Source: Prasinococcaceae sp. CCMP 1430
Taxonomy: Eukaryota; Plantae; Prasinodermophyta
Reading direction: 5' to 3'
DNA: 6,008 nucleotides
Assembly: GCA_013416795.1 (NCBI GenBank)
Contig: RQSC01000313.1
Location: forward strand, 16,741-22,748
Shown: positions 965 to 6,006 of the stretch, in pieces
Layout: each line of letters begins with the position of its first letter
Numbering within the stretch: the stretch's first letter is position 1
Notes under the pieces: generated by a model
What the model was told of the DNA's origin: nothing
What the model saw: the letters and a program-made list of their open reading frames with translations, nothing else
The model's database searches: none
Program-made: the position numbers and the translations under genes

Positions 965-2269
965 CTAACCTCAGCAGCCCTTCGCCTTGGCGTCGAGCCC
1001 GGAGCGCTTGGTAATGTCAAGCGTGGTGAAGACCTCCGAGGTCGACGGGTGGATCCCCACTGTGCGGTCGAAATCCCCCTTGGTGGCGCCCAGCTTCATG
1101 GCCACCGCGTAGCCCTGGGTGACCTCGGCGGCGTTGGGGCCGAGGTAGTGCAAGCCCAACACGCGCTCGTCGTCCTGCAGGTCGCACACGAGCTTGATCA
1201 TGCACGCCGAGTCCTCCCGGCACTTCTTGCCGTTGTGCTCCTCGTGGTTGGTGCTCCACTCGAGCGGCTTGAAGTACTGGATGTACACCTCGATGTTGTC
1301 CTCGCCGTGCTTCGCGATGGCATCCTCCTCGCTCATGCCGATGGTACCGTACTCGAGCGGGGTGAAGACAGTGGTGGGCACGGTATCGTACTCCATGGCC
1401 TTGGTGCCGCCATTGTACAGGCGCTTCGCCAGCAGGACGCCAGCATTGATCGCAACGGGCGTGAGCTCCTGGCGCGCCTCGAGCACGTCGCCGATGGCGT
1501 AGATGTGCGGCACGTTGGTCTGCTCGAACTGGGCGTCGATCTTGCCATTCTTGACGGTCTCAACACCGCAGGTCTCCAGGCCAAGGTCGTCGGTGAGCGC
1601 GCGGCGGCCCACGGCGAGCATGACGGTGTCGTAGTCGTTGTCCGTCTCGAAGCCCATGTCGAGGTTCTTCAGCGTGGCCTTGACCTTTCCATCCGCGGTC
1701 TTCTCGAACTTCGTCGGGATGGCGCCACGGATGAACTGGGTGCCGTGGCGCTCCATGTACTCAACGATGGCGTCGGCCACCTGCTGGTCGAAGCCGCGCA
1801 GGGCGATCGAGCGGATGACGACGGTCACGTCCAGGCCGAGCGCCGTCAGCAGGCCGGCAGTCTCCAGCGCGATGTATGAGCCGCCGATCACGAGCGTCTT
1901 GCCCGGCGAGGACGGCAGCGAGAACACGTCGTCCGAGGTGATGCAGCACTCCTTGTCACCTGGCACACCGAGGTACGAGGGCCTGCCGCCGACGGCAATC
2001 AGGATGCGGCGGCCGCTGATGGACTTCACCTCGCCCTTGCGGTTGGTGCAGTCGATCGTGTGCGGGCCGGTGAACTTGCCCCGCGCGTTTATGTACTCCA
2101 CCTTGGCGTCGCGCAGGGCGACGCGGTAGCCCCAATTCAGCGAGCCGATGTGGTCCTGCACGCTCCCCACCAGCGTCTCCCAGTCGTGCTTGGGCTGCGC
2201 CTCCACGTTCCAGCCCATCGACTTGGCGTCGCCCATGCTCTCGCCGAGGATGCCGGCCTGGTGCATGAG
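965..2269 (-). CDS. TXNRD: Large (animal-type) thioredoxin reductase selenoprotein, last exon (434 codons plus stop); N-terminal exon(s) not found in window
   Basis: Starts LMHQAGILG (normally follows CVNVGCIPKK), GSLNWGYRVALR, NADPH-binding VIGGSYIALE and RSIALRGFDQ, FAD-binding TNVPHIYAIGD, PTTVFTPLEYG, catalytic His/Glu in GIHPSTSE, and C-terminal GC-TGA-G-TAG. True stop is TAG at 967-965. Confidence 0.95.
971..973 (-). other. In-frame UGA recoded as selenocysteine
   Basis: AAG GGC TGC TGA GGT TAG matches the Gly-Cys-Sec-Gly C-terminal redox motif of large TrxRs; SECIS present downstream. Confidence 0.93.
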
Positions 2270-2589: not shown

Positions 2590-2719
2590 ACACACACGCG
2601 CGCACACACACAACTCCCTCCTTCGGGCGCGCAATTGCACGCCCCACCGGTGCGCGCTCACCGCCTCTCTCTAGACTGTGACTGTACCACACACACACAC
2701 GCACATGCACACACACACA
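2590..2719. repeat. Interrupted (CA)n/(CG)n microsatellite tracts
   Basis: CA-rich runs at about 2590-2612, 2688-2700 and 2708-2719. Confidence 0.85.
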
Positions 2720-2924
2720 ACCGCAGCGCACGAAAGGGTCGCGCCGCCGCGTGCCCTTTGCAGCCATAGCTGTGCGTGGTGACCTCGCCGCGTCTCCTCC
2801 TCCCGTGTCACCACCGTGCGCTCGAGGGCCCCTCCGCGTCTGTCTGTACCGTCGGTGAGGAAAGGGGTACACGGTTGGCCGTGGAGGGGGATGGGCGCGG
2901 CCCCTGCTGGCACAAGCGCACGCC

Positions 2925-3014
2925 TGTGTGTGTGCGCGCCTGCGTCGCGCTGCGTGTCCATGCCTTCGTGCCTGCGAGTGTGTGTGTGCGTGTGTGCGTG
3001 TGTGCGCGCGTGTG
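2925..3014. repeat. Interrupted (TG)n/(CG)n microsatellite tracts
   Basis: TG-rich runs at 2925-2934 and 2978-3014; another (TG)6 at 3502-3513. Confidence 0.85.
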
Positions 3015-3479
3015 CGTACCGCCGCCGCGGGCCCTTTCGCGCACGCGCGGGGGCGCGACCGCGCCGCCGCGCGCGCCCGACGCCACCATCAGATCTCATC
3101 GCGCGACGCCGATGCGAGCGCCAAGGGGCGCGCGAGCGTGCCCCTTGGGGCGCGCGCACCGGCGCAGGTCACGGCCGCAGGCGGGGCCTCCTCCGGACGG
3201 GCCCTTTGGAGGCCCCGCAGGCTTCTGTGCGCGGAGGGCACCCGAGGCGCAGGGAGGTCAGGGCGGAAGGGAGGGCGCGCGGGGCGGGGCCAGCGTGCCC
3301 CCTTCGGCCCCCCTCGCAGCGGTGTACTCCGCTGCGACGCGGCACTCTCTCGGCGCCGTGGCGCTCTCGGGGGCTCCGAGGGGGGCCGGCAATGCGTGCG
3401 TGATGGGGATGAGGCGCCGGTAGTGCGTTTTGATGGCGGCTCTCCAGGCGACGCCGGGCGCTGTCAGCACCGTCTCTCA

Positions 3480-3835
3480 ATCGGTTGGGATCTGTGATTG
3501 ATGTGTGTGTGTGGTGGCGGGCGATCGATTTGGCGCGCGCGAAAAAGAAGGAAAGGAGAGATCAAATTCAGCGCGCAACAATCGGTGGAATCGTTCTGAA
3601 ATGCCTCAGAAGTGTTGAATGTGTTAGTCGAATGTGAATGTCGAAATCAAATCAATTTGTCTGACAAATTGAACGCAAAAAAAAATGTTCGCGGCGCGAC
3701 GTGCCCGCGGCATTCGACCGCGGCGCCATCCGTAATTATTGCATTCGGTTGGACGTCTCCTTTTGAGGCTTTCGCAATTTCTTTTGGTGCAGATTTTACG
3801 CCGCGCGAAAGCGTTTCGGCCTCGTGCGCAATTAT
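3480..3835. promoter_or_regulatory. AT-rich island, promoter-like, with E2F-consensus motifs and a 21-bp palindrome
   Basis: Abrupt drop in GC, poly-A tract at about 3677-3685, TTTSSCGC matches at 3529-3536 (+), 3537-3544 (-) and 3803-3810 (-), palindrome at 3652-3672. Confidence 0.4.
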
Positions 3836-4089
3836 GAACGCGAGAACGAGCGTGAGCGGCGATCATCGCGAAATCGTCGAGGCGGAGTCGGACGCGCACG
3901 CGCGGTGAGGAAGGCTCCTCGTGGTGAGATTTCGTCGCGAGGGATTTCGGCGGGCGCGGGAGAGGGGCCAGGGACACCGGGCCGCTCATAGTGAGGGTGC
4001 CGCAGTGGTATGGGGGCGCGGGGCGCCGGGGCGTTGCGCACTGTTCGAGAGCGCTTGTGAGGGTGTGAGCAGGTGGCCATGGCGGCGGC
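3789..4089 (+). pseudogene. Possible degenerate, frameshifted upstream SLC12 coding remnants
   Basis: ADF (3789), GDHREIVEAESDAHAR (3858-3905) ending at a donor-like GTGAGG, CEGV (4056-4067) and QVAMAAA (4070-4090) occur in the order I recall for plant CCC1 (ADF...GDYYECAEEAKEACKQ...CEGVAEIVVA...EGFRGIIQ), but not in the frame of the downstream exon. Alignment is from memory. Confidence 0.35.
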
Positions 4090-4568
4090 GATGGCTTCCG
4101 CTCGCTCATTCAGAGCGCGGGCGTCGGCAATCTGCGGCCGAATCTCATAGTCATGCGGTATCCCGAGCGATGGGAGAAGCAGGAGGCCTCAATGAGCGAC
4201 GGCGGCCTCTTCTCGCCGGGGGCCAATCCGGTGGGCCGTGGCGAGACGCCCGCCGCGAAGACGCTGCGTTCAACGGACGAAGGCGCAGGGATGGGGGCGG
4301 GGGCAGGCGCTAACGGCGGCCAGTCGCCCGGCCTGGGCGGCCGCAACGGCAGTTTCACACTATCGCGGAGATCTTCACGCCGCCGGCGCAGGTCGAGCAG
4401 CGTCGGGATCGCGCCCATCGCCGACCAATTCGTGAGCATCGTCAACGACTGCCACCACGCGGGCAAGGGCGTCGTGCTCATCCACAATATCGATGCGCTG
4501 CCGTCATCAAAGTTCGACAAGGAGCGCACTCGCGAGATCATCCAGAATCAGTCCACAATCGACCTGTA
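4073..4568 (+). CDS. SLC12/CCC cation-chloride cotransporter (plant CCC1/KCC-like), C-terminal cytoplasmic domain, penultimate exon; 5' boundary uncertain
   Basis: Frame extends upstream of the 4153 ATG as DGFRSLIQSAGVGNLRPNLIVMRYPERW, matching the family motif GLGxL(K/R)PN.V.MxYP..W; later FVSIVNDC..AGKGVVLI and TIDL. In-frame TGA at 4066-4068 and a possible acceptor CAG at 4070-4072. Confidence 0.8.
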
Positions 4569-4744
4569 GTACGTCATGCGATGGCCGGGCTCGTGCCGCC
4601 ATCGTCGCTCGCGGCGCCTCTCTCCGCTCGATGTTTTCAGGCTGCGCTGCCTCCCTGCGCAGTGCACGTGTGCGCTCCAGTCAGTGGGCTGTGCGGGCGC
4701 CGCCACGTCTCTGACGCTCTCTCCCGCGCCTCGTGACTCACCAG
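4569..4744 (+). other. GT-AG spliceosomal intron, 176 nt, phase 2
   Basis: TA|GTACGT ... gtgactcacCAG|C TGG. Removal rebuilds TIDLYWLVRDGGLMLLL, the conserved SLC12 IDxxW..DGG motif. The apparent TAG stop at 4567-4569 spans the splice junction. Confidence 0.92.
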
Positions 4745-5342
4745 CTGGCTCGTCCGCGATGGCGGCCTCATGCTGCTCCTCTCGGGCCTGCTGCGGCGCG
4801 CGGCGGCGTTCGAGGGATGCCGAATAAGGGTGTTTTGCATGGGAGAGGGGAGCGAGCTCGGGGCGCTCAAGGAGGACGTGCAGCGTTTCCTGTACGACCT
4901 GCGCATGGACGCCACCGTGACGGTGCTATCAGTGGCGGACGCCGACAAATGCCAGCACTGCAATTCGCCCAACCACGACATCGCGAGGCGACTCGAGACG
5001 TACAAGCAGTCCCTTCTGTACGTGCGGGAGTCCGCTTCGAGCGAGCAAAGCGGCGATGATGCGGATCGGAAGAGGGAGCGCAGGAAAGGACGGGTGGCCC
5101 AGGGCGTGCCCTCGGAGGCGCACGTCACACATTGCTTGCACGCGTCGCTCAAGCTCAACGCCACCGTGCGCCTGCATTCGACGGGCAAGGCCGCGCTGGT
5201 GCTGCTGTCAATGCCACCCCCTCCACCCGATGAGCCGGCGAGCAACTACATGACTTACATGGACGCGCTGCTGGTGGGCATCACTACGCCCACGATGGTC
5301 GTCCGGGGGTACAGGCGCAGCGTGGTTTCAATATATCAATAG
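4745..5342 (+). CDS. SLC12/CCC cation-chloride cotransporter, last exon
   Basis: WLVRDGGLMLLL, CRIRVF, LKEDVQRFLYDLRMDA, LKLNATVRLHS, LVLLSMPPPP, YMTYMDAL and VVRGYRRSVVSIYQ-stop are the typical KCC/CCC1 C-terminal motifs. Confidence 0.92.

Positions 5343-5448: not shown

Positions 5449-6006
<558 letters not shown>

Follow-up and report, generated by a model that had tools for sequence, protein, structure and literature searches.

Whether a TGA codon ends a gene or is read as selenocysteine (Sec) is the question raised by a thioredoxin reductase (TrxR) gene on the minus strand of a 6,008-nt stretch of the genome of Prasinococcaceae sp. CCMP 1430 (contig RQSC01000313.1, positions 16,741 to 22,748; assembly GCA_013416795.1). 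The whole of this stretch is called the window here, and all coordinates are those of the window. The first-pass annotation had placed the codon within GGC TGC TGA GGT TAG at the end of the TrxR reading frame, and this string is read directly on the minus strand at 979-965, where it closes a 431-codon exon: Gly at 979-977, Cys at 976-974, TGA at 973-971, a second Gly (GGT) at 970-968 and TAG at 967-965. The open reading frame (ORF) as called (971-2266, minus strand; 431 aa) carries GGC TGC before the TGA at its 3′-end. Comparison with related sequences makes it very probable that the UGA at 973-971 is the Sec codon of an ordinary Sec-type TrxR, the penultimate residue of a Gly-Cys-Sec-Gly tail. 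The system is of a known kind, and the gene is a new, mis-annotated member of it, so that its earlier description as a known system that is easily mis-annotated was accurate. As a member of a well-known selenoprotein family, the gene itself was to be expected. The one finding out of the ordinary is a long predicted hairpin immediately behind the UGA, which constitutes a testable lead of moderate interest.

The coding part of the last exon extends on the minus strand over 965-2269, from a Leu codon (CTC, 2269-2267) to the TAG at 967-965. It encodes the C-terminal redox tail as well as three domains (NADPH, central and dimerisation). An acceptor AG is located at 2271-2270, and exon 1 is joined at that point in spliced transcript contigs. 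The exon was searched up to the Cys codon, while full-length comparisons used the database proteins P0122 and P0124. P0122 is the EukProt entry Prasinoderma_coloniale PRCOL_00002268-RA (539 aa), the public gene model, which falls in the 90% cluster of the ORF. The Pfam matches of the 431-aa ORF are Pyr_redox_2 (7.7e-41), Pyr_redox (1.4e-18) and Pyr_redox_dim (1.3e-26). TIGR01438 (thioredoxin and glutathione reductase) is the sole NCBIfam model above its own cutoff (566.6 bits for the window exon against 475.85; 694 bits for P0122), as the glutathione reductase and other models remain below theirs. Its match spans profile positions 60-483 of 485 and stops two positions short of the profile end. 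The best matches among solved structures are those of rat TrxR1 (1H6V and 3EAN, E=6e-160), in which residues 1-431 of the query align to chain residues 70-497 and the HP...E region preceding the tail is retained. Because this alignment ends at Cys497, the TGA falls on Sec498 of rat TrxR1 and the GGT on Gly499, leaving TAG as the true stop. Taken at the level of sequence, 965-2269 is the last exon of a high-Mr (animal-type) TrxR of a GC-rich marine green picoalga. The G+C content across the window ranges from 55 to 76%.

The ending of the gene was compared among 90 loci of relatives, ten of them from the same species or its nearest relative and 80 metagenomic at 59–67% identity. They represent 49 distinct 3′-ends, with protein identities of 59–100%. 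All 90 loci end in G-C-TGA-GGN-TAA/TAG, with TGA invariably as the first stop and in no case as the second. Between the two, the Gly codon varies synonymously (GGA in 63 loci, GGT in 20 and GGC in seven). The same ending is shared by five more distant genomes, those of Gonium, Chlamydomonas schloesseri, Acanthamoeba, Gonapodya and Lingula. The nearest named relatives, out of thousands of relatives overall, are the green algae Mesostigma, Pterosperma, Pyramimonas and Mantoniella, at 63–66% identity. Such conservation indicates that the GGC TGC TGA GGT TAG ending is not due to chance.

It also bears on the simplest alternative, that the TGA is a genuine stop and the TrxR is a selenium-free protein with a Gly-Cys terminus. 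The codon is read in this way by every ORF caller and in the public model, and UGA appears to terminate a neighbouring gene: a called neighbour in contig L001 of the environmental TARA assemblies ends in TGA, so UGA appears still to act as a stop in this population. All four genes of the window end in TAG, the true stop of the TrxR gene included. If the TGA were a real stop, however, nothing would preserve a Gly codon and a further stop other than TGA behind it in all 90 loci while the Gly codon drifts synonymously, and termination at the TGA cannot explain this pattern. Nor would there be a reason for the conserved downstream element described below, and a truncated TrxR1 is reported to be inactive in work cited by PMC3628699. 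A genuine stop is thus extremely unlikely.

The downstream element is a type II Sec insertion sequence (SECIS) at 661-743 on the minus strand, delimited by its fold, its architecture, its conservation in a relative and covariance models. Its quartet has ATGA at 734-731 (AUGA on the 5′-strand) and GA at 689-688 on the 3′-strand, the latter closing helix II. An AAAA bulge at 719-716 is followed by a mini-stem (715-713 with 708-706). The AAAA lies 11–13 nt past the ATGA and 26 nt ahead of the GA. This follows the published pattern of an unpaired AA 10–13 nt after the quartet and 15–39 nt before the GA, succeeded by a mini-stem (PMC2375036). Two bulges interrupt the 3′-strand of helix II, one of 3 nt (698-696) and one of 1 nt (700). 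The relative in question, L009, encodes a protein that is 83% identical, and its 3′-untranslated region (3′UTR) cannot be aligned with that of the window except in two islands. One comprises the initial 22 bases and the far arm of the hairpin that matches them; the other is the SECIS element. Within the latter, all differences between the two sequences are in loops or bulges, at unpaired positions. The 3-nt bulge is kept with every base changed (AUG in one copy, UCA in the other). The helix I pentamers are identical, whereas the stretch that links them to the core differs completely.

An element of the same architecture (A/GUGA-CG.., AA at 11–13 nt, mini-stem, ..GA) follows the same codon in 19 other lineages, 120–285 nt past the stop and beyond the hairpin. 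The quartet starts as ATGA in some relatives and as GTGA in others, the latter form having been described for the Ostreococcus SECIS (PMC2375036). GUGA-type elements were observed in L015, L016, L024-L026, L036, L048, L050, L060, L064 and L078, at 120–200 nt past the stop, and none of those tested is matched by the Rfam model SECIS_1 at its gathering score. Two covariance models, R1 and R2, were built from other lineages only, leaving out the lineage of the window. Since RNAalifold on the 19 SECIS elements gave six basal pairs only, with register shifts, the structure of R2 was supplied by hand. The element at 661-743 is the top match of both models in the whole window on both strands (R1, 10.9 bits, E=0.14; R2, 12.0 bits, E=0.077), and the copy in L009 is matched at E=0.014 and 0.006, respectively. 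Scores, position, strand and conservation together make a good case for this predicted SECIS.

A 560-aa ORF in which exon 1 is joined directly to the window exon is found in five contigs (L091-L095) of JGI samples. These contigs match the window without gaps from 2271 to 574-621 at 99.6% identity and they define a 3′UTR at 574-964 on the minus strand, with ends between 621 and 574. From this ungapped match it follows that the mature mRNA holds the UGA, the hairpin and the SECIS, and ends about 400 nt past the UGA. Population variants occur at seven sites in the 400 nt after the UGA, two of them inside the elements. C913T, the only single-nucleotide polymorphism (SNP) in the hairpin, converts a G-C pair to G-U, and the SNP G696A lies at an unpaired position of the SECIS bulge. 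In L091-L095 and P0124, the ORF reaches 21 residues upstream of the start of the public model, an extension noted within positions 1-70. This N-terminal extension is arginine-rich and resembles an organelle-targeting presequence, and alternative starts may give rise to differently targeted isoforms.

Several observations weigh against the identification of a Sec codon served by this SECIS in a working gene. The 3-nt bulge fails the filter of PMC2375036, by which more than two unpaired bases in a row are rejected, and helix I (743-739 with 665-661) is split from the core by a small extra hairpin at 682-667. Rfam finds no SECIS in the window, either at E<=1 over its whole length or at E<=10 over 600-980 (381 bases), and R1 and R2 reach 11–12 bits, with E about 0.1. 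The evidence for expression comes from environmental transcript contigs whose identity to the window is 99.6% and not complete. Finally, the window is without exon 1, and the copy as assembled encodes no complete enzyme. The silence of Rfam carries little weight, since SECIS_1 recognises only one of 18 tested relatives with the same UGA ending and misses the other 17. The modest scores of R1 and R2 can be attributed to the 3-nt bulge in helix II. The claim of the first-pass annotation that a large TrxR with a Gly-Cys-Sec-Gly end is concealed here is borne out by TIGR01438, by the alignment with Sec498 of rat TrxR1, by the ending of all 90 relatives, and by a SECIS in a transcribed 3′UTR. As to whether the organism can decode such a codon, Sec recoding machinery is inferred from the SECIS and from the genome paper of P. 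coloniale, which gives a G+C content of 69.8% and reports many selenoproteins in the species (PMC7455551). The machinery is generally present in green algae (PMC6627142), and TXNRD is among the most widespread algal Sec proteins (PMC7539508).

Between the UGA and the SECIS, a long two-tier hairpin is predicted at 880-963 on the minus strand, starting 7–10 nt after the UGA. Its outer helix pairs 960-953 with 889-882 and is separated by an internal loop (952-949/893-890) from a long inner helix. The stability of the fold corresponds to z = -5.9 and -4.0. In L009, the outer helix is the same and the inner sequence is different. In the 100 nt past the true stop, 17 of 20 distinct relatives have a long hairpin with an onset 0–5 nt after that stop and z-scores of -2.8 to -7.3. 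The spacer from the UGA is 6–11 nt in these relatives, and the hairpins are 50–120 nt long. Their sequences are unrelated between lineages. What they share is a plan, in which an outer helix of 8–10 pairs is linked through a small asymmetric internal loop to an inner helix that is longer. Close to where the 5′-arm begins, a short motif, GCUG or GCUGA(G)-like, also recurs in many copies.

In comparison with shuffled sequences, a z-score of -2.5 or below is reached by 23 of 27 lineage representatives (median -4.3). Among control windows elsewhere in the same loci, five of 131 do so (Mann-Whitney p = 2e-14), as do three of 104 windows that follow the stop codon of another long ORF. When 12 relatives are aligned (A5), seven of 17 predicted pairs maintain pairing through changes on both sides; in a closer group, the figure is one of 17. 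Outside the green picoalgae, the hairpin is found in Acanthamoeba (z = -5.3 to -6.6) and in the chytrid Gonapodya (z = -4.0 to -4.6). No such hairpin follows the stop in Gonium, Chlamydomonas schloesseri or Lingula. Rfam returns only spurious microRNA-type matches for the hairpin. Its identification as the SECIS itself, suggested by a kink-turn-like CUGA/GAA internal loop, was considered and rejected: the loop is not kept in L009, the hairpin is without the AA motif, and almost all lineages have a canonical SECIS of their own further downstream.

The hairpin at 880-963 is best regarded as a candidate recoding helper, similar to the Sec redefinition element (SRE). It is possible, at somewhat less than even chances, that the two-tier hairpin is a functional SRE-type helper that was retained, or arose more than once, in Prasinoderma, many marine green picoalgae, Acanthamoeba and Gonapodya, was lost in Chlorophyceae and in a brachiopod, and is undescribed for TrxR. 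A literature search returned no report of such an element for TrxR; it did not extend to the original SRE paper of 2005, so that an earlier description is possible. No more than two functional elements of the kind, those of SELENON and SELENOS, were known when PMC3628699 was written. If the proposal is correct, the best-known selenoprotein with Sec at the penultimate codon gains a second cis element besides the SECIS. A widely conserved TrxR hairpin would also offer a simple system for studying how local mRNA structure shifts the balance between stopping and inserting Sec at a codon placed two codons before the true stop.

The presence of a hairpin in this position is relevant to another alternative, in which the UGA is read through mainly as Cys or another standard amino acid, whether by the Sec machinery under selenium shortage or through near-cognate readthrough that the hairpin promotes. 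Insertion of Cys at the UGA of mammalian TrxR in selenium deficiency is on record (references 60 and 61, as cited in PMC3628699), and hairpins 6–10 nt after a stop, such as the one present here, are known stimulators of readthrough (PMC8704476). Against this, the SECIS is conserved and transcribed, and every relative has UGA rather than a Cys codon at the position, which argues that Sec is the selected product. Readthrough to a standard residue as the main outcome is therefore very unlikely.

Under the preferred reading, that of a Sec codon, the TGA at 973-971 would be decoded as Sec, a Gly would be added, and termination would take place at the TAG at 967-965. Recoding would be directed by the type II SECIS at 661-743, about 240 nt downstream of the UGA. 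The very stable hairpin 7–10 nt after the UGA may assist, as with the UGA in the A site it would be placed at the mRNA entrance of the ribosome. In the finished enzyme, the Gly-Cys-Sec-Gly tail would accept electrons from the partner subunit's N-terminal CVNVGC disulfide and hand them to thioredoxin.

That disulfide is encoded on exon 1, together with the flavin adenine dinucleotide (FAD) motif GGGSGG. By tblastn, neither the two motifs nor exon 1 was found anywhere in the window. Both are present on exon 1 of TARA contigs that are 99% identical to the window, of the transcript contigs and of the public model. The TARA contigs L001-L008 are collinear with the window over 1-2630, or to about 2669 if a 29-nt indel is bridged, beyond which they run into exon 1. 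By this collinearity, the intron ahead of the last exon is represented on the minus strand by its 3′-part, 2270-2669. This intron measures 356 nt in L002 and L004, and exon 1 immediately precedes it in eight TARA assemblies. Agreement between the window and the TARA contigs ends at about 2669, two bases from the donor site. On the other side, wild contigs of the UBC/SLC12 locus (L101-L104) match the window from 6008 to 4073 and then run into an SLC12 permease exon that is absent from it. The intervening 1.4-kb block (2670-4072, unstranded) fits neither neighbouring wild locus and beheads both the TrxR and the SLC12 genes. Its discordance with the wild contigs accounts for the absence of exon 1 from the window.

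A real rearrangement in the strain could have removed exon 1 and left the Sec codon and the SECIS as relics of a broken gene copy. Exon 1 is missing from the 3.7 kb upstream of the last exon, and the block agrees with neither wild locus and beheads the SLC12 gene as well. By contrast, P0122 is identical to the window exon over its 431 C-terminal residues and carries exon 1. The gene is intact in eight TARA assemblies and in five transcript contigs, and the exon in the window has no frameshift or stop and is followed by intact 3′UTR elements. A broken copy is accordingly judged unlikely. Since the public model has exon 1, the block is more likely a misjoin than a strain-specific rearrangement, and it serves as a practical warning about the assembly.

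Within the block, GT/CA-rich, microsatellite-like runs were observed at about 2688-2720 and 2960-3010, along with one stretch of 74–76% G+C and another of 55% G+C (3500-3900). In the N-terminal portion of exon 1, one of the TARA contigs, L002, departs over its positions 1-262 from the transcripts and from the seven other TARA contigs. Upstream of its position 263 is an ORF with an ELWxxDGT-like repeat motif, which represents a variant or a chimeric contig end. The window also holds a ubiquitin-conjugating enzyme E2 gene (5449-5955, minus strand; UQ_con 8.5e-50), C-terminal exons belonging to an SLC12 cation-chloride cotransporter (4073-5342, plus strand; PF03522 7e-11) and, at 23-472 on the plus strand, the 3′-end of a gene that has no match in Pfam. 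Each of these three ends in TAG. No tRNA was found over the window with ARAGORN.

The consequence for public data is that the model of this alga's only animal-type TrxR is without its catalytic Sec. P0122 terminates in ...AKGC, two residues short, and all eight database homologues whose ends were read also stop at ...GC, which is the two-residue loss that had been attributed to ORF callers. Analyses relying on these sequences consequently miss the active site.

Among known systems, the closest counterpart of the hairpin is found outside the TrxR family. The SRE of SELENON and SL1 of SELENOS are, like it, stable and conserved stem-loops a few nucleotides past a Sec UGA (PMC8704476, PMC3628699). 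In SELENOS, the UGA is likewise the penultimate codon and the stem-loop opens the 3′UTR. The spacer of 6–11 nt in the TrxR hairpins compares with 6 nt in the SELENON SRE. The TrxR hairpin differs from both in belonging to another gene family and to other organisms, with no sequence similarity; it is longer (50–120 nt) and has two tiers in its predicted fold.

With regard to the gene itself, Ostreococcus tauri and other green algae provide the precedent of a Sec-type TrxR in a marine green picoalga, with a type II SECIS that has a mini-stem (PMC2375036, PMC7539508, PMC6627142). The O. tauri enzyme has been identified as a selenoprotein, and 75Se-labelled bands have been reported (PMC2375036). 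A G precedes the quartet in the Ostreococcus-type SECIS and in some metagenomic relatives, whereas the canonical A is found here. The metagenomic relatives with an Ostreococcus-like SECIS are 59–67% identical to this lineage. P. coloniale PRCOL_00002268-RA, which has the same 431 residues, differs from the gene in the window by stopping at the TGA and by including exon 1. Compared with mammalian TrxR1, the algal gene has an N-terminal extension of 50–70 residues (in transcript models) and an 8-residue insertion near residue 340; helix II of its SECIS is bulged, and its stop is immediately followed by a large hairpin. The likeness to the mammalian enzyme nevertheless runs from end to end. About 57% of residues are identical to rat TrxR1 (1H6V, 3EAN) over 431 positions, with the same domains and the same His...Glu region, and the Gly-Cys-Sec-Gly end, the UGA as penultimate codon and the SECIS in the 3′UTR are common to both.

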